64,000 bases of DNA from Carpediemonas membranifera BICM (lineage: Eukaryota > Protista > Fornicata): assembly GCA_019828565.1 (NCBI GenBank), contig JAHDYR010000041.1, positions 101,616 to 165,615 of the forward strand. The letters run 5' to 3'. The position numbers were made by a program, and so were the translations under genes. Under the pieces are notes generated by a model that saw only the letters and a program-made list of their open reading frames with translations, had not been told where the DNA came from and searched no databases. Positions 2,277 through 45,552 of the stretch are shown here, piece after piece; positions within the stretch are counted from its first letter, which is position 1; each line of letters opens with the position of its first letter.

Positions 2277-2279
2277 ATC

Positions 2280-8966: not shown

Positions 8967-9014
8967 CATACTGTTAGAATGGCCAGTTAATCCGGGGATA
9001 TACGGAGGATAAAC
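8967..9014 (+). repeat. Left TIR of B (48 bp)
   Basis: CATACTGTTAGAATGGCCAGTTAATCCGGGGATATACGGAGGATAAAC; identical at 49595-49642, inverted at 45505-45552. Confidence 0.95.
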
Positions 9015-9238
9015 ACCCTTTTGCACAAGAAACTGCAAGAAAAAATGAGATTCACCCGTATCTTTTTCACTATTTCACACGTTTCACCAACGTTTGTGAA
9101 ACGTAGAGAAACGTGCGGAAGGTACGGGTAAGTCTCATTTTTGCTTGCATACGACGTGCTAGGGGCATTCTTGTGATTCGTAGGTAGGTGCTGATGTTGC
9201 ATAACCATTCATTGCTTATTCAAAGTGATAATAACGTG

Positions 9239-9466
9239 CTAGTGGTCTTTAAGTTGCTGTATTACATCTATAAACATATCTCCTATCTCTTCCAGAACGT
9301 GTTGTGTGTCATTCAGCCTCTCATTCACCAACCCCTCGCAATTCAGCCCAGTGATGTGATTTCGTATTTCTCGAACAGAATCTTGTATCTTGCCGACTTC
9401 ATGGAGGCAACTGGTCATATGATTAAGCCTTTCGTTCGTGGATAACCGTAACATTGTCGTCAACAC
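9239..9466 (-). CDS. Conserved ~70-aa helical microprotein
   Basis: Homolog of 7250-7466 in the syntenic subterminal position. Confidence 0.65.
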   Translation of the reverse strand: MLTTMLRLSTNERLNHMTSCLHEVGKIQDSVREIRNHITGLNCEGLVNERLNDTQHVLEEIGDMFIDVIQQLKDH

Positions 9467-9488
9467 CTGCGCAGTTTAAGATGAGAAT

Positions 9489-10709
9489 ATGACGACCAGT
9501 GAAACTGCGAAGAAAGCTGAGATTTCGCAGGGCACGTCTTGCGGATCGGATAAGAGAACAGAGTACCGCCGGCTGTTCGTGACTAGCTTCCTGGAATGCT
9601 TTTTCGACGTCGCGGACATCCCAACTATCGGTCTGACGACCTCTGACGTTCATCGCGCTCTCCTTGGCATGCAGGATGTGATATCGGGCCTCTGCAACGG
9701 CTTTCGCAAGATTGCTATTGCAAACTCCGTCAGGCGCACGACTACTGAGCCCATTCAGGCATTTGTGGCAAGTAGAAAGGGTGGCACAGAGCTCATTGGC
9801 ACAAAGATACCCTACCTGGTTGTCAGAGACAGAGCAAATGCAGCTGAACACTTGCAGGAGTTTAGAAACAGGATGTCTGTGCTGTTTCGGGGACTTGGAC
9901 TCCACGATGTCTCCAGTCTGATCACTTGCACCGGCATTCAATGGCCTCCAGCCGTTGTAATCAGGATCAAGCATCGCAAGCTCCAGCCTGAGCCACGTAC
10001 CCCAGCAGAAACACCCGCAGAGACACCCACAAAGACTCCAGTGACAACATTGGTACCAAAGCTCAGAAAAAGAGCTGACTTGGCTACCATCAAGCCTGAT
10101 TCCCCCGTCAAGAAGCTTAATTTTGATGCGCAGATGCATGAGCCTGCTCAGAAGCGATCGAGGCTCGAAGAGGCTGACTTGAAGGAGGTTGCCGCGATGG
10201 TGACGGCTTCACTCTCCACAACTGTCACTGATCTCCTCAAGCAGTCACCCAAGGCCGTTGAAATGAACGATAAGGTCCCCGCCCTCAAGCAAGCGACGTT
10301 TCTGAAGCTATATCAGCGTAAGTTACTGTTCGCATGCGCTGTTTGTGCCTCACCTGAATGGTACTTCAACCCAAACATGAAAAGAAACGAGTATGAAACG
10401 TGCTATCTCTGCCATCAGTTCATGCATCTTCAGTGTGTCAGAGAGAAGAGGATTGATGGTAAGAACAGAAAGGTTTGCGCAGCTTGCAGTCTGGCAGGAA
10501 GGTCTAACAGATGTCACGCGTGTATCAAGGACGGAGACAAGTCGACAAAGGACACTGGCGTCTGCCGGGCGTGCCTAAACTGGTTCTGCGAAGAGAAACA
10601 CTTCAGCTATGCTGAGTTCCATCTCGACGGCCAGGACTATCGTGTCAGGTTCTGCGACCAGTGTATGACTGTCTACCAGAAGGTGGCGGATATGAAGCCA
10701 ATTGAGTAA
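9489..10709 (+). CDS. PHD-finger protein
   Basis: CAVC...CYLCHQFMHLQC...VCAAC plus second Cys cluster; homolog of 5932-7155. Confidence 0.8.
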   Translation: MTTSETAKKAEISQGTSCGSDKRTEYRRLFVTSFLECFFDVADIPTIGLTTSDVHRALLGMQDVISGLCNGFRKIAIANSVRRTTTEPIQAFVASRKGGTELIGTKIPYLVVRDRANAAEHLQEFRNRMSVLFRGLGLHDVSSLITCTGIQWPPAVVIRIKHRKLQPEPRTPAETPAETPTKTPVTTLVPKLRKRADLATIKPDSPVKKLNFDAQMHEPAQKRSRLEEADLKEVAAMVTASLSTTVTDLLKQSPKAVEMNDKVPALKQATFLKLYQRKLLFACAVCASPEWYFNPNMKRNEYETCYLCHQFMHLQCVREKRIDGKNRKVCAACSLAGRSNRCHACIKDGDKSTKDTGVCRACLNWFCEEKHFSYAEFHLDGQDYRVRFCDQCMTVYQKVADMKPIE

Positions 10710-10732
10710 GTTAAATAGGGAGATTTTGAACT

Positions 10733-23045: not shown

Positions 23046-23213
23046 GATGAACTTGAGGCAGTGGTGGAGGAGGAACTCGCGGTCCGTGTGGGGCAGGGTC
23101 TCGCCGACGATGAAGGCCATGGAAGAGGCGGCCTGGGTCATCGAAGGGACCTTGACGGGGTCAGCCCAGTTGTAGTAGAGGTGGGAGGCGTTGTACGCGA
23201 ATGAGGCGACGTC
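23046..23213 (-). pseudogene. Captured PIWI-clade Argonaute C-terminal fragment
   Basis: Translates DVASFAYNASHLYYNWADPVKVPSMTQAASSMAFIVGETLPHTDREFLLHHCLKFI; cf. Piwi [33 protein letters not shown]...LYYL. Confidence 0.85.
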
Positions 23214-24399
23214 ACCACTCCCTACAACGGCGCCAGGATGTGGTCAAGGGGGAATTTGCACTGAGTCACGTCGAACTGGTTGCGGGCGACGTTGTTATCG
23301 TGACGGTGAAAGAGTGAGGGGATCGGTCTGCCCCCGCCGCTCTCTCCATGGCACTCTCCCCCGTGCGCCACCCCTGATCACTACGTCTGGACCACTATTC
23401 TTCCACGGCGTTCTCTCCCTGGCGTTCTCATAGGCAATCTTCTTCTTGCCTTCCTGATGTTGATATTAATTGTTTCTGTGTACACAAGCTTGCTAATGTC
23501 ATTATAAGCTTCACGTAGTACTAAATCGTCTTGTATTCCCGGTATTATCGTCCATATGGCTGAGCATGAATAATGATGTTGATTACAAAGGAGGGAGAAG
23601 CTGGTAGTGGCTCTAGAGCAGACAACGTTCAATGTGCAGCACGCATAGAACAACAGTCCCCTGAATATTACTGTAACTGATCATTCCACGGATTTCGTTT
23701 GCGACAGCGATCGCAAAATTGTGCACTTTACGGCTGACAACAGAGAATCGTCTGCATGCACGAAAACGTCGCGTATTCACTTGCTGCTATGCATGCAACG
23801 ACTGGCCGTGAAGAGATGGAGGCTGTCGTTGACAATGTGCTCGGTTTATAAACGCTCCTTGTTGTACGCGAATGAGGCGACGTCACCACTCCCTACAACG
23901 GCGCCAGGATGTGGTCAAGGGGGAATTTGCACTGAGTCACGTCGAACTGGTTGCGGGCGACGTTGTTATCGTGACGGTGAAAGAGTGAGGGGATCGGTCT
24001 GCCCCCGCCGCTCTCTCCATGGCACTCTCCCCCGTGCGCCACCCCTGATCACTACGTCTGGACCACTATTCTTCCACGGCGTTCTCTCCCTGGCGTTCTC
24101 ATAGGCAATCTTCTTCTTGCCTTCCTGATGTTGATATTAATTGTTTCTGTGTACACAAGCTTGCTAATGTCATTATAAGCTTCACGTAGTACTAAATCGT
24201 CTTGTATTCCCGGTATTATCGTCCATATGGCTGAGCATGAATAATGATGTTGATTACAAAGGAGGGAGAAGCTGGTAGTGGCTCTAGAGCAGACAACGTT
24301 CAATGTGCAGCACGCATAGAACAACAATCCCCTGAATATTACTGTAACTGATCATTCCACGGATTTCGTTTGCGACAGCGATCGCAAAATTGTGCACTT
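23190..24399 (+). repeat. Tandem copies of the 671-bp SET-chromo spacer unit
   Basis: Period 671 (23381 vs 24052); other copies near 27720-28400, 29907-30510, 31893-32295 and inverted at 37506-39557. Confidence 0.9.
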
Positions 24400-24463
24400 T
24401 ATGGCACGTCGAGAGACGGCAGAAACATACCCTACAGCTCAGGTTGGCTCAACTGTTAATGTG

Positions 24464-25908: not shown

Positions 25909-25977
25909 AATATCTCAGGGGGATCTTCCTGCTGGGCTGGCTAAGACCGGGTAGCACATCTTCACGACAGATCGACT

Positions 25978-27084: not shown

Positions 27085-27113
27085 CGAAATGTTCTCGTGC
27101 AGATTTTGTCAGA

Positions 27114-27782: not shown

Positions 27783-28357
27783 ACGCTCCTTGTTGTACGC
27801 GAATGAGGCGACGTCACCACTCCCTACAACGGCGCCAGGATGTGGTCAAGGGGGAATTTGCACTGAGTCACGTCGAACTGGTTGCGGGCGACGTTGTTAT
27901 CGTGACGGTGAAAGAGTGAGGGGATCGGTCTGCCCCCGCCGCTCTCTCCATGGCACTCTCCCCCGTGCGCCACCCCTGATCACTACGTCTGGACCACTAT
28001 TCTTCCACGGCGTTCTCTCCCTGGCGTTCTCATAGGCAATCTTCTTCTTGCCTTCCTGATGTTGATATTAATTGTTTCTGTGTACACAAGCTTGCTAATG
28101 TCATTATAAGCTTCACGTAGTACTAAATCGTCTTGTATTCCCGGTATTATCGTCCATATGGCTGAGCATGAATAATGATGTTGATTACAAAGGAGGGAGA
28201 AGCTGGTAGTGGCTCTAGAGCAGACAACGTTCAATGTGCAGCACGCATAGAACAACAATCCCCTGAATATTACTGTAACTGATCATTCCACGGATTTCGT
28301 TTGCGACAGCGATCGCAAAATTGTGCACTTTACGGCTGACAACAGAGAATCGTCTGC

Positions 28358-29146: not shown

Positions 29147-29762
29147 ACCATTTTGGGTGTGATACCGGCTTTGCTTCGCTTTGGCCGCCAGCGCCATCGT
29201 GAGTCATGACCTCCTGGCGGATGGCAGTCTCGACGGGAGCTTGAATGCCTCGAGGTAGCCCCTGATCCCCAACCTAATGCGAAGACGTGCAACCCGGCGG
29301 TAGCCAGCCGGAGCTGAGCCGAAAGTCGCCATCTAGATGCCCCGACGGAGTGTACGGTGGTTCGTGAGGCGACTGTTCCCCTCATGCCGTCCATATAGGC
29401 ATCCGCGCTGGCGTATCCTGCTGAATCCTTCGCCCCAGAGCTCATATCGGTTTCTTCAGAACGAAATTCTAAAGAAATGTTCGCGGGTATGCCTGATCAT
29501 CGCGCGTCGAAAGACAGCAGGAACGTACCCTACAGCTCAGGTTGAAGTAGGCTTGGCTTTGGTTCAACTGATAAATGCGCCATTGCTCCGTTTATATCAT
29601 CCAATGTTAGGATGCCTTGCTATGATGATATACCGGTCACTACGCTTCTGGGCGACGGTGGAGGCTGATGGTATGGCAGCGCAGGGGCATGAAGCGGGTC
29701 AGAGGGGTGGGTAGTCAAGGGATACTGACCGATCTTGGAACTTGGATGATCGTTGAGAACCA

Positions 29763-29930
29763 GATGAACTTGAGGCAGTGGTGGAGGAGGAACTCGCGGT
29801 CCGTGTGGGGCAGGGTCTCGCCGACGATGAAGGCCATGGAAGAGGCGGCCTGGGTCATCGAAGGGACCTTGACGGGGTCAGCCCAGTTGTAGTAGAGGTG
29901 GGAGGCGTTGTACGCGAATGAGGCGACGTC
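29763..29930 (-). pseudogene. Duplicate of the captured PIWI C-terminal fragment
   Basis: Identical to 23046-23213. Confidence 0.85.
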
Positions 29931-30471
29931 ACCACTCCCTACAACGGCGCCAGGATGTGGTCAAGGGGGAATTTGCACTGAGTCACGTCGAACTGGTTGC
30001 GGGCGACGTTGTTATCGTGACGGTGAAAGAGTGAGGGGATCGGTCTGCCCCCGCCGCTCTCTCCATGGCACTCTCCCCGTGCGCCACCCCTGATCACTAC
30101 GTCTGGACCACTATTCTTCCACGGCGTTCTCTCCCTGGCGTTCTCATAGGCAATCTTCTTCTTGCCTTCCTGATGTTGATATTAATTGTTTCTGTGTACA
30201 CAAGCTTGCTAATGTCATTATAAGCTTCACGTAGTACTAAATCGTCTTGTATTCCCGGTATTATCGTCCATATGGCTGAGCATGAATAATGATGTTGATT
30301 ACAAAGGAGGGAGAAGCTGGTAGTGGCTCTAGAGCAGACAACGTTCAATGTGCAGCACGCATAGAACAACAATCCCCTGAATATTACTGTAACTGATCAT
30401 TCCACGGATTTCGTTTGCGACAGCGATCGCAAAATTGTGCACTTTACGGCTGACAACAGAGAATCGTCTGC

Positions 30472-31258
30472 ATGTACGAAAAAGTCGCGTATTCACTTGC
30501 TGCTATGCATGCCATGACAAGATATAAGATTGCACCTGAGGAGGTGAAGAATTCTCATCGCCAATGCGTCAAGGACGCTGTTCTCGAAGCCTGGCTCTCA
30601 TCTTCGGCTGGTTTCAAGTGGGCAACAACTCTGATTGACGAATTGAACGCTGCATACAAAGGCTCAATCACATACAACCTCCAGAGCCTTCTCTTCAGCG
30701 TTTTCCCCGAGGAAATGACGGACCCGCGTGCAACGAACGACATACTGCGTGTGCATAAGCTGCTTGGCCCAATCATAGGGCAGACCGTCTTCTTGGCCTC
30801 CATCTGCAAGACTGATAGCATCTCCATCACGCGCGATCACTTCATGTCTGTGTCCTCACCCGTGCCTTTGTCATTGGATGATCGCAGAGCCGCATACGTG
30901 GCTCATACCTTCCCGAGTGTCTGGTCGACACTGGTCGAGGCCCTGATGATCGGCAGCATCGACCAGGCGATCTTTGCTGATATCTGCCTCGCCATTTTCG
31001 AGGCTCCCGATCCGCAGTTCGCCGACACGAAGAAATATGCGCAGCTGACTGATACCTGTCTCGTACGCAGTGGAGAGTGTTACTGACAGGGATACTGAGC
31101 ATAACAGCTGTAAGGTGAAGTGGTTCGGTTACCCCATCCCGACCTCTGCTCCGCTGTCCGAGTACAAGCAGTTTACGAATGAGACTCATGTGTCGAAGCG
31201 TGGCAGAGGTGTAGACAGTGGTTTTGTTGGGAAGGGACGCAGACTGAACCAGAAATAA
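30472..31258 (+). pseudogene. Duplicate chromodomain gene with 2-nt deletion near 31060
   Basis: Copy of 28358-29146; may be an assembly indel. Confidence 0.65.
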
Positions 31259-32469
31259 ACCATTTTGGGTGTGATACCGGCTTTGCTTCGCTTTGGCCGC
31301 CAGCGCCATCGTGAGTCATGACCTCCTGGCGGATGGCAGTCTCGACGGGAGCTTGAATGCCTCGAGGTAGCCCTGATCCCCAACCTAATGCGAAGACGTG
31401 CAACCCGGCGGTAGCCAGCCGGAGCTGAGCCGAAAGTCGCCATCTAGATGCCCCGACGGAGTGTACGGTGGTTCGTGAGGCGACTGTTCCCCTCATGCCG
31501 TCCATATAGGCATCCGCGCTGGCGTATCCTGCTGAATCCTTCGCCCCAGAGCTCATATCGGTTTCTTCAGAACGAAATTCTAAAGAAATGTTCGCGGGTA
31601 TGCCTGATCATCGCGCGTCGAAAGACAGCAGGAACGTACCCTACAGCTCAGGTTGAAGTAGGCTTGGCTTTGGTTCAACTGATAAATGCGCCATTGCTCC
31701 GTTTATATCATCCAATGTTAGGATGCCTTGCTATGATGATATACCGGTCACTACGCTTCTGGGCGACGGTGGAGGCTGATGGTATGGCAGCGCAGGGGCA
31801 TGAAGCGGGTCAGAGGGGTGGGTAGTCAAGGGATACTGACCGATCTTGGAACTTGGATGATCGTTGAGAACCAGATGAACTTGAGGCAGTGGTCCCCGCC
31901 GCTCTCTCCATGGCACTCTCCCCCGTGCGCCACCCCTGATCACTACGTCTGGACCACTATTCTTCCACGGCGTTCTCTCCCTGGCGTTCTCATAGGCAAT
32001 CTTCTTCTTGCCTTCCTGATGTTGATATTAATTGTTTCTGTGTACACAAGCTTGCTAATGTCATTATAAGCTTCACGTAGTACTAAATCGTCTTGTATTC
32101 CCGGTATTATCGTCCATATGGCTGAGCATGAATAATGATGTTGATTACAAAGGAGGGAGAAGCTGGTAGTGGCTCTAGAGCAGACAACGTTCAATGTGCA
32201 GCACGCATAGAACAACAATCCCCTGAATATTACTGTAACTGATCATTCCACGGATTTCGTTTGCGACAGCGATCGCAAAATTGTGCACTTTACGGCCGAC
32301 TGCCTGGGAAGGTATCGACTCGAAAGGATAGGGGCGTCTCTGTCTACCTCACAGATGAATAAATGAATGTATATATGCCTGTCTGGGCATCAGCGCTGTC
32401 GTTCAGGCCAATCTCGCTCGCAACCGAGCTTGAAGCAACGTCGACTCCTTTTGTCAATTTACTCATTAC

Positions 32470-34322
32470 TCACTCGCTCGCCGTCTCCAGTTTGCTCACA
32501 CCGGAGTATACTGCGGCGTGCTCACCCTCAATCAGAATAACGCCATCGAAGTCCGACTCATGACAGGCCTTGACGACAGCAGCGCGGCTTCTCAGTGTCA
32601 TCTTCTTGATGCGGCCACTCGCCATGTGTAGAACCGCATCGCTTATCCAATGGCCTTGCTTTTTTGCGTTGTCAATGACGAGCACGGTCTTCTTGTTGGC
32701 GTGTGCCCATGTCCGTATGGCTTCTGTCGTGAGGTACAGGCTCTTCTTATCGAAAAGCTCGTCGGGCTCGAACCAAGTGCCGTGGAATACGACTGACTTC
32801 TTCGCCCACGCGGTCAGTCTCGCTCTGAAACCGGCAATGGCGTTATCGTCCAAGTCCGTGTTGTGAACAAGGTAGTGAAGGGCGTGTGCGATGCAACTCC
32901 CATCTGGAGGCACGTTGTGTACATCACAGAAGCGCTTGATGTCTGCCATTGCACGAAGGTTGTCATAGCCTCTCTCAGGCTCAGGCTCAGCTGGCTCGCT
33001 GACGCTAAGATCTATGATATCAGCACACGGCACACACTCTTTGTTGTTGGCCTTCTCGGGCTCCGTCTGGGTGTTGGCTTCGCATGTCTTCACTGTCTTC
33101 ACCTCCGACTCGCCCTTCTTCTCATTTGCCTCACCCTCGTCCTCCTTCTCCTCAGGCTCATCATGCACCTCTGTCACCTCCTCTACCTCGCCCTCCTCCT
33201 CCTCGTCTGACTCCTCTGAGTTGCTATCGACATCAGCGATCTTCTGAGGGATTGTCATGAGGGCCTTGCGCTTCATGTGGATTGTGTCGCTCTTCCCCGT
33301 ACGGCGGGGGGTACTCGTTCGTGCTTGGTGTGTGCCCGACTGGGGTAGGTCGCGGCGAAACGGCGCGGGTGTCGGGCTGGCACCGATGGAGATGTCAGCT
33401 GCGTATCCCACGTCTTGCAGCAGCCTCGTGACGGTCTCCTCCAGCTCGAGTACTCTCTTCTGCGCCTTGTGATGGAGCACTCGTGCCTCCATCGGAAGAG
33501 ATGGGAGGTCTTTGTGAATCCAGTCCTTCATTTCGAGCAGCTTGGATACGCGAAGGTATCTGTCGAACTGGACGTCGACGTGGTTGTCCCCAGCAACCGC
33601 AGCTGACTCTCGAGAGGCGCGAATGCGAAGCTCGCCGTGCACCTCCTTCTGGACTCTATGCCACAGGACGTAGTTGCGAGCGTTATTGTCCTCCCACTCC
33701 TTGAGCTTCTGGGCGATCTTTCTCTCGCGCCGGCGCTTGATCGCGCGTTCTCTAATCTCATCGTCGGACTCGTTGTCAAAGTCCACCTCACTCTCACTGT
33801 CGCACAACTCAGAATCGTCGACGCCGCTCTCTTCACCACTGTCCACGCCACTCTCATCGTCGACGGGTTCTTTCTTAGCGCTCTCGGCCTTGCCCTTGCC
33901 CTTGTCCTTCTCCTCGGCGTCAATGGCCTCAATAATGGCCTTACGCGCCTTGCGCTTCTCCCTGGCTATACACGATATCAGCCTGGTTGTCGTCAACCCA
34001 CTTCGCCAGCGCGCCGAGCTTCTTGGAACTTCTTGGTCCGGCGAGTGCCATAAACTGCTTCTTCAACTTATCCTGGAGCTCTTCCTTCTCGTCCTTCGTG
34101 AGGCGGAATTTCGTAGTGATATGGTTCAGGTTGATTCCTATATAAGCATTGCTATGACTACAAACGCTTCCTGATCACTAGATCGAGCAGTTTCCGTTCA
34201 TCCAGCAAAACCGCGCGAAGGACAGCACATTTGGCATGATTGGTGGTTGCCTTGGTGTATGCAGCCAATATCGCATCGTACTGTTCCTTGCTAGCGCTCT
34301 CAATCCACTTTAGCAAGTCCAT
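32470..34322 (-). CDS. Acidic/coiled-coil protein with C-terminal OTU-like protease
   Basis: NVPPDGSCIAHAL and EGEHAAVY; VDVQFDR motif shared with the A OTU; 5' exons inferred (GTTTGT...AG intron near 34138-34165). Confidence 0.75.
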
Positions 34323-35513
34323 TTTCGGCACTATCAGCAAGAGAGCATAAAAAAATGGACATAGAGTGCCAAAAGTAATAAACTGAAACCATCCACACGG
34401 CAACTATGTACCTAGGCGGCCTCAGTACCTCCAATACCTTCCGTATGTGCTTTTTTGTCCGTCCCTACTTCGTCCCACGAACCAGAAAAAAGCGCAAAGA
34501 GAGGGCCCTTTGAATAATTCTATAACGGCAGCAGAGCATAAAACACGGTTCGAAAGGGCTGATTTTATGCTCTCTTGCCGTTAGTTCAAGCCGAGGCACG
34601 CTTCGGGCGAGCTCCGGCCAAGGGGTCCAGGAGTCAGCTTTTGGGGGAAGGTCTGTGGTGCTATAACGTACCTCGGGACGCACTGTGGAGGCCCCTAGAG
34701 TACTCGGTCATGACATGTCAGATCAAGGGTCCCTCAAATCTGGCCCCATTCAGGATGCACCCCCTAAATGTTCCGTTGCAAGCGTCTGACGGGCGTTCTC
34801 TGGATACCGACCAAGATGGAGGTCACATGGATCAACGGACGAGTATTGCGGTATTCTGGCCATGCCTGGTACTCTCAAATCATCTATACTGCTCAGTGCT
34901 CCATTTATAGTTCATATCGTTTCGTCCTGATGGACTTATGGTACTTGATGTTGTTTAGGGATTATTGTTGCTTTAATGATGCTCTGCGCCCGAATACTGA
35001 TGTTTCTTAGTGTTGCGTACATGCCTACTACGTTAAAGCCGCCAGTATTCTTCCTATTCGTCAGTTCGTAATTTCAGTCTCGTTGCGAGCATAAAATGCA
35101 CATTGTGAAAGGAAAGTGGGTGGTTATCTAATGGATACAGGGCAGGACAAGGTACACGAATGCCGTCCTGAGGTTTGGCATGGGATACTGATCTCATACG
35201 TCAAAAATGGGCGGTGGTATTCGAATTTCAGAATTTCGGCATGTCCGAATTCCGAGGCAAGCGGGTAGGGTGTACAAAACCTGGCCTGGGTACCTATTAG
35301 AGCGAATAGAGAATGGCAGCACCATGGATTCGGTTTTCAGAATAATAATTGCATTTGGATCGCCATTTCAGAATTACTTCCAGCACCGGAGATTATCATT
35401 AAATCTGGGAGTGTAACAACACTTTTAAAAAATGAAAGGTCCCCATTCACCCACTCAGGCCCTAGATCACGTATCTGAGCTCAGTTTGGGTCAATTCCCA
35501 ATACTTTAGAGTT

Positions 35514-36932
35514 TTGTATGGTCGAAATTCTGAAATAGCAATCCAAACTGAAGCAGCAAAAACTCATCCCATGGAGGCTGTAGCGGCAATAGACGAAGAT
35601 ATCATGAAGCGTTGGTTGAAGAATGTTCCAACCAAATCGCGTACGAACTACAACAAGCTTCTGAAAGACGTTTTGGCCAGAATTTGTCAGGAAACCGCCA
35701 CAGATATCCAGAAGGGCATCGAGATTGTCCGTAGTGACGAGCTGGTAACCCATTTGCGCCGGTACCTCGCTGAGAAGCCTCTGGGGACGCAGAAGAAGAT
35801 CGTTTCGGCTGTTCAGTCTTTCCGGAACTTCGACTTGCCACACCCCGCGAAGCCGTTGTCCTGGAAAGAGGAGAAAGAGGTGTCGCCTGCATCAGTTGAG
35901 AGTCTCCCCAGCCCGTATGGCGCCATTGCCATTCTGCTCAACCAGACGGGCTGGGAGTATTCGTATCTCCAAGGTAATCTCCCCGATGCGATAGACCTTA
36001 CCTCGTGCCCGAGCTGGATGGGCTTTGGCACGCTCAAATCGGGATTCCCGCAGGCCAGTGCTGTATCGGAGGCGCTCAAGGTTCAGGGGTTGACGGTTCG
36101 CATGCTTCGCTTTGCGCAGCGGATCGACGTGTCCACCGATAGGATGCAGTCTATCGGCACGCTAGAGCGCCGCGGCAGACCGCAGGAGAAGCCTCAGAAG
36201 GTCATTAAGGACAAGCGCATCAGCCTGACCGATGAGCAGTTCAGGCACCAGTTGGCGTCCAGTCACTTAACGACCACGCGGCGCCCAACGATCCTCGATC
36301 TCAACCCGGAGATCCGAAGCTCTGCCGACCTGGTGCCGCCGACGCTCGATGACTGGCTTTACAAAAAGCTCAGGATGAGGATGGTCCAGCTCCACGACCA
36401 GCGTAAGCCCGAGGGGGGCGACACGGGAGAGGGCGAGTCTGACGATGAGGCGCTGTTTGACGAGACAGCTGGCGAGGCAGAGATGCCGGAGACCGTGGTG
36501 GAGGGCGAGTTTGACGAGACAGCCGGGTTGGAGATGCTGGAAGGAGAGTGGGAGGATGAGGAGAGTTCAGACAGCGATGCCGAGGATAGCCTCGTCGATA
36601 ACCTGTCATTTGTTCTGTCACAACAGGTTGAGTGTGACATGTCTGAGAGAGATACCGATGAGGGTGTCCGTAGCGGGGCCAATGGAAGTGGGCTCGCTCC
36701 GCTCTATGACTCTATGAAGACCAGGGTGCCCAGCAGACGCATTCGCCTTCGCCGCTATCACGAGAGCGAGTCAGACTTGGGTAGCAGCAGCGACAGCGAG
36801 GACGGGATGCCGAAGCTGCCCGATGAGGCCTTTCAGCACATCCGTGATGCCGGAATGACAACTGTGAGGCTGACGAGGGCCGAGTATGACGACGTGATGG
36901 AGAAGAGAGAGCAGGAAAAGCATCAGAAGTAA
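35514..36932 (+). CDS. Degenerate tyrosine-recombinase-like protein with acidic C-terminus
   Basis: SRTNYNKLLK...TQKKIVSAVQSF (core-binding-like); AILLNQTGWEYSYL at the LLxxTGxRxxE box; TVRMLR at the HxLR box. Confidence 0.4.
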   Translation: MYGRNSEIAIQTEAAKTHPMEAVAAIDEDIMKRWLKNVPTKSRTNYNKLLKDVLARICQETATDIQKGIEIVRSDELVTHLRRYLAEKPLGTQKKIVSAVQSFRNFDLPHPAKPLSWKEEKEVSPASVESLPSPYGAIAILLNQTGWEYSYLQGNLPDAIDLTSCPSWMGFGTLKSGFPQASAVSEALKVQGLTVRMLRFAQRIDVSTDRMQSIGTLERRGRPQEKPQKVIKDKRISLTDEQFRHQLASSHLTTTRRPTILDLNPEIRSSADLVPPTLDDWLYKKLRMRMVQLHDQRKPEGGDTGEGESDDEALFDETAGEAEMPETVVEGEFDETAGLEMLEGEWEDEESSDSDAEDSLVDNLSFVLSQQVECDMSERDTDEGVRSGANGSGLAPLYDSMKTRVPSRRIRLRRYHESESDLGSSSDSEDGMPKLPDEAFQHIRDAGMTTVRLTRAEYDDVMEKREQEKHQK

Positions 36933-37387: not shown

Positions 37388-39557
37388 GATTGGCCTGAAC
37401 GACAGCGCTGATGCCCAGACAGGCATATATACATTCATTTATTCATCTGTGAGGTAGACAGAGACGCCCCTATCCTTTCGAGTCGATACCTTCCCAGGCA
37501 GTCGGCCGTAAAGTGCACAATTTTGCGATCGCTGTCGCAAACGAAATCCGTGGAATGATCAGTTACAGTAATATTCAGGGGATTGTTGTTCTATGCGTGC
37601 TGCACATTTAACGTTGTCTGCTCTAGAGCCACTACCAGCTTCTCCCTCCTTTGTAATCAACATCATTATTCATGCTCAGCCATATGGACGATAATACCGG
37701 GAATACAAGACGATTTAGTACTACGTGAAGCTTATAATGACATTAGCAAGCTTGTGTACACAGAAACAATTAATATCAACATCAGGAAGGCAAGAAGAAG
37801 ATTGCCTATGAGAACGCCAGGGAGAGAACGCCGTGGAAGAATAGTGGTCCAGACGTAGTGATCAGGGGTGGCGCACGGGGGAGAGTGCCATGGAGAGAGC
37901 GGCGGGGGCAGACCGATCCCCTCACTCTTTCACCGTCACGATAACAACGTCGCCCGCAACCAGTTCGACGTGACTCAGTGCAAATTCCCCCTTGACCACA
38001 TCCTGGCGCCGTTGTAGGGAGTGGTGACGTCGCCTCATTCGCGTACAACAAGGAGCGTTTATAAACCGAGCACATTGTCAACGACATCCTCCATCTCTTC
38101 ACGGCCAGTCGTTGCATGCATAGCAGCAAGTGAATACGCGACGTTTTCGTGCATGCAGACGATTCTCTGTTGTCAGCCGTAAAGTGCACAATTTTGCGAT
38201 CGCTGTCGCAAACGAAATCCGTGGAATGATCAGTTACAGTAATATTCAGGGGATTGTTGTTCTATGCGTGCTGCACATTGAACGTTGTCTGCTCTAGAGC
38301 CACTACCAGCTTCTCCCTCCTTTGTAATCAACATCATTATTCATGCTCAGCCATATGGACGATAATACCGGGAATACAAGACGATTTAGTACTACGTGAA
38401 GCTTATAATGACATTAGCAAGCTTGTGTACACAGAAACAATTAATATCAACATCAGGAAGGCAAGAAGAAGATTGCCTATGAGAACGCCAGGGAGAGAAC
38501 GCCGTGGAAGAATAGTGGTCCAGACGTAGTGATCAGGGGTGGCGCACGGGGGAGAGTGCCATGGAGAGAGCGGCGGGGGCAGACCGATCCCCTCACTCTT
38601 TCACCGTCACGATAACAACGTCGCCCGCAACCAGTTCGACGTGACTCAGTGCAAATTCCCCCTTGACCACATCCTGGCGCCGTTGTAGGGAGTGGTGACG
38701 TCGCCTCATTCGCGTACAACAAGGAGCGTTTATAAACCGAGCACATTGTCAACGACAGCCTCCATCTCTTCACGGCCAGTCGTTGCATGCATAGCAGCAA
38801 GTGAATACGCGACGTTTTCGTGCATGCAGACGATTCTCTGTTGTCAGCCGTAAAGTGCACAATTTTGCGATCGCTGTCGCAAACGAAATCCGTGGAATGA
38901 TCAGTTACAGTAATATTCAGGGGATTGTTGTTCTATGCGTGCTGCACATTGAACGTTGTCTGCTCTAGAGCCACTACCAGCTTCTCCCTCCTTTGTAATC
39001 AACATCATTATTCATGCTCAGCCATATGGACGATAATACCGGGAATACAAGACGATTTAGTACTACGTGAAGCTTATAATGACATTAGCAAGCTTGTGTA
39101 CACAGAAACAATTAATATCAACATCAGGAAGGCAAGAAGAAGATTGCCTATGAGAACGCCAGGGAGAGAACGCCGTGGAAGAATAGTGGTCCACACGTAG
39201 TGATCAGGGGTGGCGCACGGGGAGAGTGCCATGGAGAGAGCGGCGGGGGCAGACCGATCCCCTCACTCTTTCACCGTCACGATAACAACGTCGCCCGCAA
39301 CCAGTTCGACGTGACTCAGTGCAAATTCCCCCTTGACCACATCCTGGCGCCGTTGTAGGGAGTGGTGACGTCGCCTCATTCGCGTACAACAAGGAGCGTT
39401 TATAAACCGAGCACATTGTCAACGACAGCCTCCATCTCTTCACGGCCAGTCGTTGCATGCATAGCAGCAAGTGAATACGCGACGTTTTCGTGCATGCAGA
39501 CGATTCTCTGTTGTCAGCCGTAAAGTGCACAATTTTGCGATCGCTGTCGCAAACGAA
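37388..39557 (-). repeat. Three tandem 671-bp units in inverted orientation
   Basis: ORF echoes at 37583, 38254, 38925; 37388-37910 is the inverse of 31893-32412. Confidence 0.9.
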
Positions 39558-41153
39558 ATGAGCAGCGCTAGTTCATATGAGTACACCAAGGACCTATTTA
39601 TAGCGTCTTTCCGGCTCTGTTTCCATAGAACACTGACAATCCCCGGGGATATACCCTCAATCCTCAAACTCGCCTTTTTCAACCACTTCGACGAAGAAAT
39701 GCCCTCGAGTGTGGCTTTTGAGATCCCCAACAGAGCAAGTGTTGATGTTGTCCAAATTAGCTTTGCAGAGCGCCAAATGATGGAAGCCATACTGTCAATG
39801 ATTCCCCCTCTCAAACCATCCGCGCAAGCCCTCCTCGACTGCGCCCGCTCCATCCTCACAGACGGCCCCCCGCTTTCCATGAACATCCCATTGGCTCCAG
39901 GTCAGGAGCTCCCCGTTGCCCTTCACACGCTCAACCAGGGCACGTTGTGGGCGTGTCTGATGGGTGCTGGGGCCAACCCAGACCTCGAGGACATGGTTCT
40001 GAGGCGGTGTCAGAGCCAAGGCCCAGGCGAAATCGAGATGCACAGCAAGATCCGCCGCATTTTCACTCCAGACGACAAGTGCCTCTGGTTCCTCTGCCGC
40101 AAGTTCCACTTCTCGCTGAACGTCGCCGAGAAGGACGGTGAGAGCTTTCAGTGCAATGCGTACGATAGATGCTACCACCACCGCATGTACATGGGCCGAC
40201 TCTTCATGCTCGACACTGAGCACCACGCCGCCCTCACCAGGGCCAGAATGCCCAGGGCCCTCAAGGTTTTCAGCGATGATTCCACCCAGATCGCCAAGAC
40301 GCCCAAGGGCCTGTGGGCCTGGGGCAAATGCCATCGGAATGACAAATCCAGGTTCTCTGCCCCGTTCCGCCTCACCTTCCCCGAATGCCCCAGAGTATCC
40401 CACCTCGAGGCCAGCCTGCCCCCCTGGGAGAAGCACAGGATGGTGGTCGATGTATCACTATGGGCAATAGAGGCCTTTATACTCACCCCTGTCGGCACTA
40501 TCGAATCAAGAGGGCCTGGGAACGTCTTCAAAGAGGTCGCTTTGCCGACAGGATTTGTTCCTGATCACATCCTACATGGATTTAAGACAACTATCCTCTC
40601 CATGGGCGATCGTCAAATGATAAGCGGTTGGAACGGCTGTGGACGGTTGGGTCTTGGGCACAAGAAGAAGCTTTCTGGCTTCATTGACCTTCCCCATCCG
40701 GTGGAACAGATCATATTTTGCGATTATAACAACTTTAGCATCTTCGAGAGTGACAACCGATTGCTATTTGCTGGCAGAGTTCCTGAATACCTTGAATCGT
40801 TTGTTGATTTGTATGAGGGCGAGAAATGCGTCACACCAACCCATATAGAGCTGCCATATCTGCGGACGAAAGGATTCTTCGCCGGGGAGGCGTGGGTCAT
40901 CTGGGTCACTGAAGGCAAGAGTTATGTCTCGTGCAATTTTGGTGGCTTAGACAAGTTTTATGTCCCCTTTGAGGCCAGATATGCTTCCATAGATGGCGAT
41001 CTAGTCGAGAAACCTGCTGATGGCTGCAAATTCTGCAATTCAGCCGGTCAATGGCTCGAAGTAGTGCGCGTGGCTTCCTTCGTGGCCGAGATGCGTGAGT
41101 GTGAGTCGCCCAGAGGTGTTGAAGTTGACACGATCGATAATGTAAAGACGTAA
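39558..41153 (+). CDS. Divergent RCC1-like beta-propeller protein
   Basis: KGLWAWG, GWNGCGRLGLG; homolog of 56786-58319. Confidence 0.6.
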   Translation: MSSASSYEYTKDLFIASFRLCFHRTLTIPGDIPSILKLAFFNHFDEEMPSSVAFEIPNRASVDVVQISFAERQMMEAILSMIPPLKPSAQALLDCARSILTDGPPLSMNIPLAPGQELPVALHTLNQGTLWACLMGAGANPDLEDMVLRRCQSQGPGEIEMHSKIRRIFTPDDKCLWFLCRKFHFSLNVAEKDGESFQCNAYDRCYHHRMYMGRLFMLDTEHHAALTRARMPRALKVFSDDSTQIAKTPKGLWAWGKCHRNDKSRFSAPFRLTFPECPRVSHLEASLPPWEKHRMVVDVSLWAIEAFILTPVGTIESRGPGNVFKEVALPTGFVPDHILHGFKTTILSMGDRQMISGWNGCGRLGLGHKKKLSGFIDLPHPVEQIIFCDYNNFSIFESDNRLLFAGRVPEYLESFVDLYEGEKCVTPTHIELPYLRTKGFFAGEAWVIWVTEGKSYVSCNFGGLDKFYVPFEARYASIDGDLVEKPADGCKFCNSAGQWLEVVRVASFVAEMRECESPRGVEVDTIDNVKT

Positions 41154-41167
41154 AGCTAAGTATTTCT

Positions 41168-43909
41168 GTGATGACGAATTCTCTGATAACGTGGGTTCTC
41201 GGGAATCTTGTCGTCTCATTCCCGCCTGATACGACCGGTGACCACATATGTTGCGCCATATACTCGCATCTCTTCTCCTCTCGTCTCCCAGGCTTCAATA
41301 AGAGAAAGATACACGAAGAAAACGTATTCCAGCACGCCATCCGGGAATTGGGCAGCATGAGGAACGATATAAGCCAATGTTTCACCAGCAACGTGAAGAA
41401 CGATTGGAAGCGTGCAGTCCAAAGGATGACTTCTTCCAACCTTGTCACAGTTCATCCAGTCAACGACGAAGTTGAACGTTTGCGTGCCCGCGTTCAGGAG
41501 CTAGAGAAGCAATTGCGTGACACGACCTGCTTGCTGGACATGATGAGCTCGCTGAACGCCATTCTGTCCGGCAAGAACAACGACACGGCATTCCACTCGA
41601 TGTTCAACAGCTTTGCGAGTCGGCTGGGACTAGACACGATAGGAAGGACTCAGAAGCGCCGGGAGCCGATTGCCGGGCTGGACATGAGCATACTCAATAT
41701 CCCAGGCCTTCGCGAGGCACTGTCGGAGGAGGAGGTGGCCGATCTGTCTTGCTTCATTCCCGTGGAGTATGCCATCCAAGAGGCTGGCGTCACAGTCACA
41801 GCTGACAGCTCCAGGCTGACTGTCCCTATCGGTCAGACCGTCAATTTCATTGGTTCGCAGGAGCTCATTGACGCAACCGTGGAACGTCTGCAGCTCACCC
41901 CGACTGACGCTGTCCGCTTTGGCCAGACAACCAAGCTACTATATGCAGACGCGATAGATGCGAAACAGGCACGTGATACTGTCCGGGCCGACAGGATTCA
42001 TAGACGGCAGGGACTTCGCTCTACAATTATTTCCCCCAACCCCTGGGATTTTGTTAGTTCGGTTTTCTTTGACTGTGAGGCCATATGCACCTCGGTCCTT
42101 CTTCGTCCGATGGCATTTGTTGCCGATAAGCCTGCTCGGAAGACATGTCTGGAGGTATGCGCAAAGGACGACGAAGTTGAGGCTGGCAGGGTCTTCAACC
42201 TTGAGTTGTGCCTGTGGGTTGACGGCTGGAAGCATGGAACTACTGCAGTTAAGTTCAGGCTTGGTGACAAGGAGGGCATTGCCATTCCTGGGAAGTTGAC
42301 CCGGGTCTTCACACTCTTGGAGTTCATCGGCCACGAGGACCAAATTCCATCTTTGTACCCCCGTATTGCTGCGGAGATCAGTAACTTGGTTAACCTCCAC
42401 TTCTGTGTCCGGCAGACTGGCGCTATTGCCCAAATTTGCCGCGTCCATACCCTGGCCGACAACAAGGCTCTCCAAGTTCTGCTCGGAACCATGCGCGGCG
42501 GCAAGAACAGGTGTGTGTTTTCTGTTCTCAGTGATTCAGAGTTCATTTCCAACCCGTATGGATTCAGTACCATACGCGATCGTATCGCCGCTGCCAACCC
42601 ACAGTACAAGGTCATCTCTGTGCAGTTATCCGACCTACTCCTCCGCCGACAGATGTACTACGCGGCACAAAAGCAAGAGATTGATCATCTGAGCAGTACA
42701 CTGGGCCCAGGCAGACGAGTGAGGATCAAAGAGAAGGATCGGATCACCTTGGATCTTCAACACCGGTACGGTAAGTACAAGTGGGATGAGAATCAGTTCA
42801 TCCCTCTGTTCCAGGACAGCCCTGCTCTTGCCGAGTTGACAACAGTCGCCCCGCCGCTGATGCACACCAGCCATGAGCTCCTTGAGCAAGTCGCGTGTCT
42901 GGTTAAGATGTTTCCACAACCACCACGCAACCCAGAACTCTCTTTCTGGCGTCAGCAGAGCGGCAATACTGAGTTCGTCAGAACAGTTGGCTGCAACGAG
43001 CAAGAGAGAGCTCGTGCAAGACTGGCAGTCCTGGCTACCTCACATATCACGTGTGTGCCAGAGTGTGTGAGAGAGCTTTTCCGTGTCATCGCTCACCTCC
43101 AGCATCTTTACTACTCGATGGAGGACCCGACCCCTGAGCTGATCCGCTGGCATTGGGTCGCCGCCGCAGTCATACACGCGTTCCACACCGCAATGAGCAT
43201 CTGCCCTGATGGCTCATACCGCACCAAGACCAAGAGTGCGGAAATGAAGAAGCCTTGTGTCATAACCCTTAAGATGCACGCTGCCGTTGCAGTCATTCCG
43301 TTGATCCATCAGGAGACTATGCTCCCTCTGACGTTCATGCTGGAGGAACATTTTGAGCGATCATTCCTGCCCAACATGGAGATGAAGCAACGCGCTCAGA
43401 GAGCTCGAATTCTGCATCTCGTCAGTCTGATGTCCCAGGCGAAGTACATCAAGCGTGCGTTGCTGAGGACTGAGTCCGCTGGCAGGAGACAGCACAGCAT
43501 TCCGGCGCTGGGAACACTTGTTGCCATGCATGTACATGAGTGCGTGAAGAGTGCCCAGATGTGGAAGAAGGTGCGCGGAATGAGTGTGGATCCATTGGAG
43601 AACGCAGGTCTAGACCAGCTGAAACGTGATCTCACCACGTTCTGGCGAACATTCGACTCGAGAATGGCACAGGATGTGATGACATGCCAGGTAGTCTGGG
43701 ACGATGGTATGCTGCACTGCCAGTTACCAAAGCGCACGGAACCGCGTAATCCCGTGGAAATCACGGTATGTATATGCGAACATTTGGGAGCTGGTCACGA
43801 TTCGTCTGATGACGAGGCTTATCGCCCAGGGAAGTCGAGGAAGAGTGCCAAGAAACGGAAACAGCCTACTATTCCGTCATTTGGTGGGTTCCAGCCAGAC
43901 AATGAGTAA
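41168..43909 (+). CDS. Chapaev/Transib/RAG1-like DDE transposase of C (913 aa, intact)
   Basis: LWVDGW (D at 42221), TLADNKAL..LLG...RC (D at 42458), PPLMH, TLKMH...LPLTFMLEEHFE (E at ~43355); cf. Transib HKxLxH...LPIGxLSEEAxE. Confidence 0.8.
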   Translation: MMTNSLITWVLGNLVVSFPPDTTGDHICCAIYSHLFSSRLPGFNKRKIHEENVFQHAIRELGSMRNDISQCFTSNVKNDWKRAVQRMTSSNLVTVHPVNDEVERLRARVQELEKQLRDTTCLLDMMSSLNAILSGKNNDTAFHSMFNSFASRLGLDTIGRTQKRREPIAGLDMSILNIPGLREALSEEEVADLSCFIPVEYAIQEAGVTVTADSSRLTVPIGQTVNFIGSQELIDATVERLQLTPTDAVRFGQTTKLLYADAIDAKQARDTVRADRIHRRQGLRSTIISPNPWDFVSSVFFDCEAICTSVLLRPMAFVADKPARKTCLEVCAKDDEVEAGRVFNLELCLWVDGWKHGTTAVKFRLGDKEGIAIPGKLTRVFTLLEFIGHEDQIPSLYPRIAAEISNLVNLHFCVRQTGAIAQICRVHTLADNKALQVLLGTMRGGKNRCVFSVLSDSEFISNPYGFSTIRDRIAAANPQYKVISVQLSDLLLRRQMYYAAQKQEIDHLSSTLGPGRRVRIKEKDRITLDLQHRYGKYKWDENQFIPLFQDSPALAELTTVAPPLMHTSHELLEQVACLVKMFPQPPRNPELSFWRQQSGNTEFVRTVGCNEQERARARLAVLATSHITCVPECVRELFRVIAHLQHLYYSMEDPTPELIRWHWVAAAVIHAFHTAMSICPDGSYRTKTKSAEMKKPCVITLKMHAAVAVIPLIHQETMLPLTFMLEEHFERSFLPNMEMKQRAQRARILHLVSLMSQAKYIKRALLRTESAGRRQHSIPALGTLVAMHVHECVKSAQMWKKVRGMSVDPLENAGLDQLKRDLTTFWRTFDSRMAQDVMTCQVVWDDGMLHCQLPKRTEPRNPVEITVCICEHLGAGHDSSDDEAYRPGKSRKSAKKRKQPTIPSFGGFQPDNE

Positions 43910-44339
43910 GTTTGAAGAATATAAAGAAGGATTTATGGCGAGACACCCGTTTATGAATTTACTCGATTGTATGTAATATGATACAGTTCCACGCTTCAGC
44001 CGACGGAAGGCTCCTTTATCGGGACCTTTCGTAAATCCGAAGAAAGAAGTGCGCAATTCGGACAAGATGGATCAATATGAAGAAAGAAGTGATAGCTCAA
44101 AGCTGATCAGCCACAAACTGGCGTTTAACGTTTGTGATCGCGAGATTTCGGCCTGCATGCGCGTTGTTTCCAAGTGTTTGTCCATTCAAGATGTCGCTGC
44201 CGAGGTTAACCACATTAATGAGAATCTTTACCTCGATTCACGCATACCGAAAGAGCTGAACGCAATTGTGCGTTCTTCTCGCATCATTGAAGAAGCTGTG
44301 ATTGCATTCGCCACAAACAGCATAGTTCGCGGTCAGTAA
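43902..44339 (+). CDS. Possible small spliced hypothetical gene downstream of the transposase
   Basis: ORF 44049-44339 extends upstream if a short GT-AG intron ending at 43999 is removed; no homolog seen. Confidence 0.3.
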
Positions 44340-44942
44340 CCACTGATGGCGCGAATCTTGATGCACATTGGCTTCTTAGTGCCTGCGTGGATGTTTGATG
44401 TTGTTTTCGTTTCTTTTCGCGAGGTTCGAAGACTCTTTGTATTCATTTTCATCGTCTTTGGAAATAAATCGACTGAATCTTTCTCGAGTCATTCATTGAA
44501 TTGCTTGGAATAGGTTTAATTTAAATGGAAATGGATGTGCTAGTCCTCCTCTACGCCTGAATGCGGACACGGCGCATACTGTCTTTTTCGAAATATCCAA
44601 AGTGAGTGCAAATAAAAATAAATAAAGTTGTACCCTCAGGATACTTCTATAGTTAGGTACTACTCATGGGAGAAGTTTCCTCTCTTTCTGAACTTCCTAC
44701 AGAGCAGCAGCCTCAATTCTCGCAAAAACCAGTGAATCTTTTTAATATCTCGCGATTGTACGTTGGAATATTCCCATAGATCTAGCTCGTGTCCTTATTT
44801 GCCTTGAACTAACCTTTACTAGATCTATAGAAATATTCCTACGCTCAATCTTGAGATTGGAAGAAGATTTGGTCGAAAAATGGGCAAAAATGGGTACCAT
44901 ACCCACCTCTTGACCGAATTTTAATGAATTTTTTAAAGATAC

Positions 44943-45010
44943 TGGGTACCTTACCCATGGGTAAGGTACCCATTCGAGGTGGGTACCTCACCCCCCCCGG
45001 AGACAGTATG
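44943..45010 (-). repeat. Right TIR of C
   Basis: Reverse complement of 20571-20639, with the G-run one base shorter. Confidence 0.95.
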
Positions 45011-45504
45011 GGATCATGCCAATTGCCGATCTCAGCTCTATGGAGCTAAGTGCACTTGAGCTCTGAGCCAAGTCTTCTGATTCCATCTTATCGCCGATAA
45101 AAAATTGCAAATTTTGAGATACAGAAGATTGAATCTGTCCCCCAGAAAACCGAACATACTCCGATGATGTATACTGACTATATACCGTAGTATGGCCTGC
45201 TTTCTGGGGGACAGCTTCATTCTTTTGATTGGTTGATTCAGTCATTAGTTCCCGGCGACTGAGAAGGAGTTGACGCATAAAAACAACAGAGGATACTCTT
45301 TAGAACACACAGACTTTGCTGACAAGGCCACTTGGTCGTACGACCACTTTTGCCTTCGACCTTAAAATGCGAGAGGCAATTTGCTCGACCACCAATCTCG
45401 CACATGTTACATCAAGCATGGATATGTCATTAATGCACTCGCATCTATCATTTCAGCTGCTTCTTAGGACTTCGAACGCCCTGAAGCACGAATAAGGAAT
45501 TTGC

Positions 45505-45552
45505 GTTTATCCTCCGTATATCCCCGGATTAACTGGCCATTCTAACAGTATG
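45505..45552 (-). repeat. Right TIR of B
   Basis: Perfect reverse complement of 8967-9014. Confidence 0.95.

Follow-up and report, generated by a model that had tools for sequence, protein, structure and literature searches.

Nested elements with CATACTG termini

The 64,000-nt stretch of DNA analysed in this study (the window), positions 101,616 to 165,615 of contig JAHDYR010000041.1 in the Carpediemonas membranifera BICM assembly GCA_019828565.1, is a nest of transposons, in which five elements (A to E) were found inserted into two tandem retroelement copies or into one another. Besides transposase genes, the elements carry genes for predicted SET, PHD-finger, OTU and caspase-like proteins, among others, and this combination is the subject of the present description. 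The sequence CATACTGT occurred 10 times in the window against 1.42 times expected, and no shuffled sequence reached 10. Self-comparison of the window and reading of the ends identified seven of the ten occurrences as element ends, namely those of A at 7618 (-), B at 8967 (+) and 45552 (-), C at 20571 (+) and 45010 (-), D at 49595 (+), and E at 54110 (+). The other three, at 7095, 39788 and 44575, were located inside elements or coding sequence, in a number that fits chance; the one at 39788 was considered as an old inner terminus and rejected, because it sits within the conserved coding sequence of an RCC1-like gene. All element termini start with CATACTG, a pair having the form CATACTG...CAGTATG, and the target-site duplication (TSD) was 2 bp in all three fully bounded elements: CG for B, GG for C, and GC for an element in a second assembly described below.

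Element B (8967–45552, minus strand) has 12,146 bp of its own sequence, divided into 8967–20570 and 45011–45552 by element C, which is nested inside it. Its terminal inverted repeats (TIRs; 8967–9014 and 45505–45552) are perfect over 48 bp, and its empty site was found at 49530/49531, where a single CG is read straight through, versus a CG on both sides of the filled site. Element C (20571–45010, plus strand; 24,440 bp) is bounded by TIRs of 69 and 68 bp (20571–20639 and 44943–45010), which differ solely by one G in a G-run; its empty site was located at 50138/50139 inside D, with one GG there versus two in B. An initial sequence-only reading of the window had proposed five elements with common termini, two of them (B and C) with full TIR pairs and 2-bp TSDs; the positions of CATACTGT bear out the first proposal, and the TIRs together with the empty sites in the window bear out the second.

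The remaining three elements were seen in part. Element A (1–7618, minus strand), of the same subfamily as B, extends beyond the window start; its terminus (7611–7618) resembles the B TIR, and the site matching its right end (7618) is empty at 48181/48182 in the other copy of the flank. Element D (49595–54107, plus strand) is an inverted copy, 99.7% identical, of the transposase end of B; its left end (49595) adjoins a site that is uninterrupted in the other flank copy, and its own sequence is interrupted by element E (54110–64000, plus strand), which is of the same subfamily as C and continues to the window end. E starts where D stops matching B, and the corresponding point is uninterrupted in B. 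The two bases preceding E are AA versus CA in B, presumably a 2-bp TSD with one substitution, the other end of E lying beyond the window.

The flank between A and B (7619–8966, plus strand) is a fragment of the first retroelement copy, the target of both elements, which resumes at 45553. It recurs at 48182–49531 with 99.85% identity. The segment 45553–49594 (plus strand) comprises the remainder of the first copy and the start of the second, with an ORF of 614 aa (47796–49640) and the empty sites matching elements A, B and D. An RVT_1 domain was detected in 45533–46231 (E 8e-12), identifying the flank as a retroelement and not a host gene. The insertions of A, B and D into the two tandem, near-identical copies thus span a stretch of about 1.4 kb, a clustering for which target preference or survival bias is a possible reason.

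A third fully bounded element was found in assembly GCA_002919055.1, at positions 2171–13799 of locus L003. It is 11,629 bp long and has TIRs of about 45 bp beginning CATACTGC, with GC on both sides. In a check of reading-frame continuity, its removal in silico together with exactly 2 bp restored a Ty3/gypsy ORF of 939 codons. The interrupted gene is a pol gene of the Ty3/gypsy type, the integrase of which has a chromodomain (677–2206 and 13748–15128), so that chromoviruses are present in that genome too; the G+C content is about 48%. That the repeats of the window are segmental duplications or artefacts of Nanopore assembly is highly improbable. The published C. membranifera assembly was based on Nanopore and Illumina reads (PMC8516963), B and D are nearly identical, and the single-base indels between them lie mostly beside homopolymer runs, but the breakpoints coincide exactly with the ends of TIRs and are each accompanied by a 2-bp duplication and an uninterrupted matching site, and the independent short-read contig of the other assembly has the same architecture, with the frame restored on removal of the element. 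The identity of these sequences as transposons is very likely.

Movement was very recent. B and D differ at 17 alignment positions over 4.5 kb and C is present only in B, which places the entry of C after a B/D divergence of only about 0.3%. The transposase gene of B (17488–20196, minus strand) is broken by four single-base indels relative to D (at 50656, 50975, 51816 and 52765 in D coordinates), three of which adjoin runs of at least 6 identical bases while the fourth is in a C-rich stretch; a further frameshift was observed in the B SET gene near 12430. As the assembly is Nanopore-based, these frameshifts may be consensus or assembly errors rather than true decay. The transposase ORFs of D and C are intact. 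The boundaries first drawn for B stand, with the correction that its own transposase and SET genes carry frameshifts.

Transposase and its predicted fold

The transposase of C (41168–43909, plus strand) has 913 aa, with D352, D431 and E726 as the proposed catalytic residues, and that of D, representing the B/D type (50512–53220, plus strand), has 902 aa. The two types share 26% identity over 800 residues. No transposase family was matched in Pfam scans of the two proteins and 23 family members with E values of up to 10; sequence searches of the PDB with profiles of 2 and 23 transposase sequences gave nothing relevant; and word-indexed protein searches returned the query alone or few matches. 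An exhaustive hidden Markov model search of 1.84 billion representatives recovered only 25 relatives, with mutual identities of 50% or less, most of which were hypothetical proteins of C. membranifera (KAG93... accessions), the rest being from GCA_002919055.1 and a few metagenomes. Another ORF of the window was 100% identical over 157 residues to a C. membranifera contig.

The alignment of these relatives showed conservation of W-x-D-x-W (containing D352), (A/G)-D-H-K-A (D431) and L-L-E-E-x-F-E-R (E726/727), as well as of R-T-x-G-C-N-E-Q. A further motif, P-P-x-M-H, was invariant in all transposases of the alignment, with no role assigned to it. In a distant metagenomic member, P0024, C-S-F-C was found about 22 residues after the second aspartate and H-S-M-L-H about 20 residues before the glutamate. 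Elsewhere in C. membranifera, one locus (L001) holds two divergent transposase genes (2302–4857 and 10001–12574) within 8 kb, and another (L004) contains a repeated unit with CATACTGT at 17, 1113, 6882 and 7978, in an identical 10-bp context. Clean element ends were sought in L001, L004 and L005, and none was found in these three loci.

An AlphaFold2 model was built from the 23-sequence alignment, with a mean predicted local distance difference test score (pLDDT) of 78.7 and a predicted template modelling score (pTM) of 0.73. In the model, D352 is on the first of three consecutive strands, D431 directly follows the fourth strand, and E726 is on a helix after a helical insertion of about 290 residues. 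This predicted layout is that of an RNase H-like DDE core with an insertion domain. In a Foldseek search of the PDB, ranks 1 to 48 were occupied exclusively by mouse and zebrafish RAG1, the amphioxus RAG1-like protein BbRAGL (6b40) and HzTransib (6pqx, 6pqr and 6pqn), with E values of 1e-9 to 2e-2, about 500 to 800 aligned columns and target-normalised TM-scores of 0.45 to 0.54. The matches after rank 48 were unrelated (probability 0.11 or lower), and a search of a viral structure library with the same model returned noise only. The earlier expectation that the proteins of about 900 aa would have a RAG1/Transib-type fold thus agrees with the structural matches, and at the level of predicted fold they passed the check for an RNase H/DDE core, the D..D..E residues being placed on such a core.

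Cargo genes and their association with the element

The order of the cargo genes is common to A and B. BLASTP identities between the two were 31% for the PHD-finger protein, 59% for the caspase-like protein and 35% for the GNAT-like protein, with OTU and SET proteins also shared. The genes of A were located at 1–864 (GNAT-like, +), 2703–3650 (OTU, +), 3730–4395 (SET, -), 5061–5885 (caspase-like, +) and 5935–7176 (PHD, -). C and E share a gene block in the order Y-SET-X-OTU, in which X and Y are proteins described below, and their BLASTP identities were 97% for the HEPN-like protein, 45% for the RCC1-like protein, 26% for Y, 38% for SET, 33% for X and 85% for the OTU protein. For A/B and for C/E, these comparisons confirm the proposed division into two subfamilies with syntenic cargo.

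Four of the cargo families could be identified directly. The PHD-finger proteins of B (9480–10706, plus strand; Pfam PHD_4, E 0.013) and C (24553–25914, minus strand; Pfam PHD, E 0.0099) were aligned in a set of five sequences from two assemblies, in which all eight ligands of the C4HC3 motif are invariant with canonical spacing and are followed by a second zinc finger. The profile gave weak matches to the PDB (E about 0.01), dominated by PHD structures, and with the ligand pattern the predicted PHD identity was confirmed. The SET methyltransferase of C (27063–27779, plus strand; copy in E at 60240–60947) matched Pfam SET above the cut-off (E 2e-5), and a seven-member profile matched EHMT2/G9a and EHMT1 at 3e-12 to 1e-11, then LegAS4, KMT5A, SUV39H2, EZH2 and MLL. 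Motifs of the N-H-S type and E-L-x-x-D/Y-G are visible, and the assignment to the SET family was confirmed by profile and motif; in B a remnant in two frames remains (12260–12732, plus strand), which was recovered by tblastn with the A SET protein at 43% to 51% identity in frames 3 and 2. The OTU-like cysteine protease of B (12788–13891, minus strand) has invariant G-x-C and H motifs, and in C an OTU domain forms the C-terminal part of a larger protein (32473–34062, minus strand; copy in E at 62718–63998). OTUD3 was the best match of the OTU profile (E 0.0036), A20 and viral (nairovirus) OTUs were also matched, and the OTU identity was confirmed on these profile matches. In the caspase-like protein of B (10736–12043, minus strand), S-G-H and a Cys are invariant. 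The AlphaFold2 model of its L003 orthologue was of low confidence (pLDDT 53, pTM 0.61), and the top 50 Foldseek matches in the PDB were all caspases, SAVED-CHAT or MALT1, with E values down to 9e-8, so that the caspase-like identity was confirmed by predicted fold. In an index of 5.8 billion proteins, this family had almost no members outside these transposon contexts.

The GNAT-like and RCC1-like proteins were identified through relatives. The GNAT-like protein of B (16480–17166, minus strand; copies in A at 1–864 and in D at 53542–54126) had no direct Pfam match, and its sole PDB match was a GNAT (E 1.2); by hhalign, its family matched transposase-adjacent genes of L009 and L006 that have Pfam Acetyltransf matches (93%, E 3e-7), and the GNAT assignment is thus supported transitively. 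The RCC1-like propeller protein of C (39465–41150, plus strand) is encoded directly upstream of the transposase, with a copy in E split into two ORFs (56789–58331). It was linked by BLAST to an L002 gene with Pfam WD40_RLD/RCC1 matches, and its profile matched only propellers of the RCC1 type (HERC1, RCC1, RPGR and UVR8, E 0.009 or weaker), by which the predicted RCC1-like identity is supported. A RAG2-like propeller was considered for this gene and rejected, as the profile matches were to these proteins and not to kelch proteins or RAG2.

Of the calls made earlier from sequence, those for SET, PHD, OTU, caspase-like, GNAT and RCC1 cargo hold by profile, motif, fold or transitive matches, and two others hold weakly. 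The HEPN-like protein of C (22168–22779, minus strand; copy in E at 55508–56293) matched Pfam HEPN_Swt1 at E 0.0026, under the curated cut-off, and has an R-x4-H motif, hints of a possible HEPN domain. Protein X of C (28340–29143, plus strand; duplicate at 30454–31083 and copy in E at 61118–61966) has a chromo-like C-terminal motif, YAVE..C.VKW.G.P, which is conserved, but database searches with X gave no significant match and left the chromodomain unconfirmed, so that a chromo identity is weakly indicated by the motif. A further call, that of cargo resembling a tyrosine recombinase at 35466–36929, was rejected, neither this ORF nor its paralogue having any recombinase match. With it falls the main point, besides a size of 12 to 24 kb and the many genes, that could favour a giant element of another class, either mobilised by a tyrosine recombinase (Starship- or Crypton-like) or self-replicating (Maverick-like). 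Such an origin is hardly credible, since no polymerase, capsid or integrase was found among the ORFs scanned and TIRs combined with a short TSD are characteristic of cut-and-paste elements of the DDE type.

Inside the TIRs of the L003 element, genes for a transposase, a double-OTU protein, a caspase-like protein, one protein without assignment, a SET protein and a PHD protein were found. In L002 and L006, further contigs of that assembly, and in the metagenome contig L009, genes for PHD, RCC1, OTU, SET, caspase-like and GNAT proteins lie beside transposases that are 25% to 31% identical to those of the window; a metagenome scan returned only contigs of the PPCM01 assembly, which occur among the NCBI genomes as well. 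Because the same genes, the CATACTG terminus and the 2-bp TSD recur in a second assembly, the cargo appears, on present evidence, to belong to the element. DNA transposons do capture fragments of host genes, and the frameshift in the B SET gene and the mosaic structure of C and E, with their duplicated segments, would suit accessory genes picked up by chance (transduplication) and without a role for the element. This is nevertheless very unlikely: the same five gene families stand beside transposases only 25% to 30% identical in two assemblies and a metagenome, their catalytic residues or zinc ligands are invariant, their ratios of nonsynonymous to synonymous substitution rates (dN/dS) are below 1, and the caspase-like family scarcely occurs elsewhere. 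The claim that the cargo is conserved under selection has gained by this comparison, a cargo kept beside the transposase in a second assembly and also in a metagenome being stronger evidence than the sequence-only reading had.

Internal repetition accounts for about a quarter of the 24.4 kb of C. Self-comparison revealed three tandem repeats of 671 bp at 37501–39559 and inverted copies of the same unit at 23190–24405, 27725–28404, 29907–30518 and 31894–32413; the units are about 99% identical, lie between cargo genes and each contain an ORF of 151 codons, and they may represent a promoter or intergenic module present in several copies, or else a nested repeat of small size. A tandem duplication of 2.1 kb (27792–29782 and 29907–31893, 99.8% identical) doubles the gene for X, the second copy of which is shortened. 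Six 24-bp tandem repeats at 26732–26923 encode an 8-residue repeat, G-D-G-x-P-A-x-Q, in cargo protein Y (25981–27108). The left arm of C with the HEPN gene (20571–22842) shares 93% to 97% DNA identity with that of E (54110–56748), the remaining genes common to the two share 26% to 45% protein identity, and the RCC1-like gene has been relocated and inverted, a mosaicism that suggests recombination between divergent lineages. The description of the elements as giant is thus relative, for C does reach 24 kb, but partly through internal repeats, and the basic unit is about 12 kb.

Placement, possible mechanism and comparison with known systems

In a study of 2025, EnSpm/CACTA, Mirage, Chapaev, Transib, Plavaka, ESTA, Lanisha and RAG1 were united as the CMCT clade, characterised by TSDs of 2 to 5 bp and a C(2)C and H(3-4)H signature; a match of ESTA transposases to RAG1 was obtained with HHpred only, and TET/JBP, an epigenetic enzyme, is encoded in several of the fungal lineages of the clade (PMC12730594). 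The present family has 5′-CA..TG-3′ termini, a TSD within 2 to 5 bp and, in the predicted structure, an RNase H-like fold that bears the DDE triad, the second aspartate and the glutamate being separated by a long insertion. Because of the termini, the TSD length, the D-D-E layout and the relict C(2)C/H(3)H motifs, it was provisionally filed within the broad CMCT clade. Recognisable sequence similarity to any named lineage of the clade was not found in Pfam or the PDB. The strict features of Transib are lacking, the TSD being 2 bp and not 5 in all three tested insertions and the terminus CAT and not CAC (as in CACWATG, which resembles the RSS heptamer), and so is the TA duplication of ESTA, in place of which CG, GG and GC were observed. 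Among the short-TSD lineages Mirage, Chapaev and CACTA, agreement with Mirage is limited to the 2-bp TSD.

Taken together, the elements probably form a lineage of the CMCT clade that had not been named before, made up of autonomous cut-and-paste DNA transposons with a DDE transposase of RAG1/Transib architecture. Several points weigh against this conclusion. No sequence-level match to RAG1, Transib or CACTA was obtained in Pfam or the PDB, so that the link to RAG1 and Transib rests on a fold predicted from a 23-sequence alignment, with moderate TM-scores of 0.33 to 0.54; the proposed triad was assigned from conservation and the order of strands and helices. To our knowledge, no structure of a transposase of the CMC superfamily (CACTA, Mirage and Chapaev) has been solved, and the fold search is consequently blind to whether the family is nearer to Transib or to CACTA, Mirage and Chapaev. 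The C(2)C/H(3-4)H zinc ligands are missing from both transposases of the window and degenerate in most Carpediemonas copies, and the transposase and SET genes of B are frameshifted. Pairwise dN/dS for the cargo ranged from 0.18 to 0.68 (0.18 for the A/B caspase-like pair), all below 1, but most pairs are saturated at synonymous sites, and ratios of 0.5 to 0.7 were obtained for the two closest pairs; owing to this saturation, the ratios are weaker evidence than conservation across assemblies.

The family could also be an ordinary, unannotated member of the catalogued CMC superfamily, of Mirage or of CACTA/EnSpm, rather than a new lineage. Mirage has a TSD of 2 bp, CACTA/EnSpm one of 3 bp and Chapaev one of 3 to 4 bp; CACTA elements are commonly 10 kb or longer, and CMC elements are often long and contain several genes. 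The 5′-CA..TG-3′ termini and the 2-bp TSD are within the CMCT range (PMC12730594), and novelty was judged against Pfam and the literature. This assignment is still unlikely, in view of the lack of a Pfam transposase match up to E 10 for 23 members, the finding that, of 1.8 billion representatives searched, members came almost exclusively from Carpediemonas and a few metagenome contigs, and a literature search in which no paper on such cargo or on the lineage was found. The original description as an undescribed lineage is accordingly kept as regards the missing Pfam family and literature, but not as regards the kind of element, which is known through the CMCT clade (PMC12730594).

By analogy with related enzymes, transposition of the unnamed lineage may proceed as follows. 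The transposase would bind the conserved terminal 7 to 8 bp (CATACTG) and nick there, excision would follow via a hairpin on the flank as in RAG and Transib (and also hAT) enzymes, and the 3′-OH ends would be joined to target phosphates staggered by 2 bp. Judging from domain content only, the accessory proteins could have nucleosomes or ubiquitin signalling near the element as their targets: the PHD protein, and perhaps the chromo-like one, would read histone tails, the SET and GNAT proteins would write marks, the OTU protein would remove ubiquitin and the caspase-like protein would process partner proteins. The purpose might be the choice of insertion sites rich in transposable elements or the tuning of silencing of the element. 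Such a chromatin-directed role of the cargo is plausible, at somewhat less than an even chance. Every bounded insertion seen lies in another transposon, which is compatible with reader-guided targeting to repeat chromatin or, equally, with survival bias.

Cut-and-paste transposons normally encode one or two proteins. Here, by prediction, a histone methyltransferase and an acetyltransferase have been retained across species together with a deubiquitinase, a protease of caspase fold and a reader of the PHD type, which suggests that host chromatin is read or manipulated by the element. Every element has a conserved gene for a PHD-finger protein at its far end, and RAG2 consists of propeller and PHD modules fused in one protein; the elements with a PHD protein and an RCC1-type propeller would thus hold separately the two modules that are fused in RAG2. 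Should these proteins guide or license cleavage, histone reading would have been coupled to a RAG1-like nuclease before animals arose, and the origin of control of the RAG2 type could be studied in this family as a tractable model. A deep sister lineage of Transib/RAG1, with a transposase that has long worked with chromatin readers encoded by the element, is quite unlikely. With this family, the RAG1/Transib architecture, as predicted, is extended to a free-living metamonad and combined with another terminus and another target stagger; the family may serve as an outgroup for reconstructing how ancestors of the RAG recombinase worked. These proposals are testable, as the copies look recently active, the host can be cultured, and its genome and RNA-seq data exist.

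Among known systems, Transib/RAG1 (HzTransib, amphioxus ProtoRAG and vertebrate RAG1) provides the only solved structures that resemble the transposase model. Shared with it are an RNase H core that is predicted to bear the DDE residues, the glutamate being preceded by a long insertion, and a short conserved terminal motif with a CA start and a TG end; the heptamer of the RAG recombination signal sequence, CACAGTG, equals CATACTG at five of seven positions. The present elements differ in the 2-bp TSD (5 bp in Transib/RAG1), in the CAT terminus (CAC), in having no detectable sequence similarity to these proteins and in the loss of the zinc ligands in the window copies. Unlike the RAG system, they have no RAG2-like kelch gene, and separate PHD and RCC1-type propeller proteins are found instead. 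With the short-TSD lineages of the CMCT clade (Mirage, ESTA, CACTA/EnSpm, Chapaev, Plavaka and Lanisha) they share CA..TG termini and a TSD in the range of 2 to 5 bp and, in the distant member P0024, the C(2)C and H(3)H motifs in their expected positions. Whereas fungal members of the clade carry a single TET/JBP gene, a conserved set of at least five genes of predicted histone and ubiquitin types is present here, in a metamonad host. Cargo-bearing DNA transposons include KDZ elements with TET/JBP, Mutator-like elements and CACTA with a Ulp1 protease, and Helitrons with OTU. As in these cases, a chromatin enzyme or a protease is stably carried along by a DNA transposon; each of them, however, has one accessory enzyme, whereas predicted writer, reader, deubiquitinase and caspase-fold genes occur here together and in synteny. 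Thus, the kind of element, a cut-and-paste transposon of CMCT/RAG1-like type, some members of which carry an epigenetic enzyme, is already known, whereas the novelty, as judged against Pfam and the literature, lies in the lineage, the combination of terminus and TSD, the occurrence in a metamonad and, chiefly, the conserved cargo of several chromatin and protease genes.

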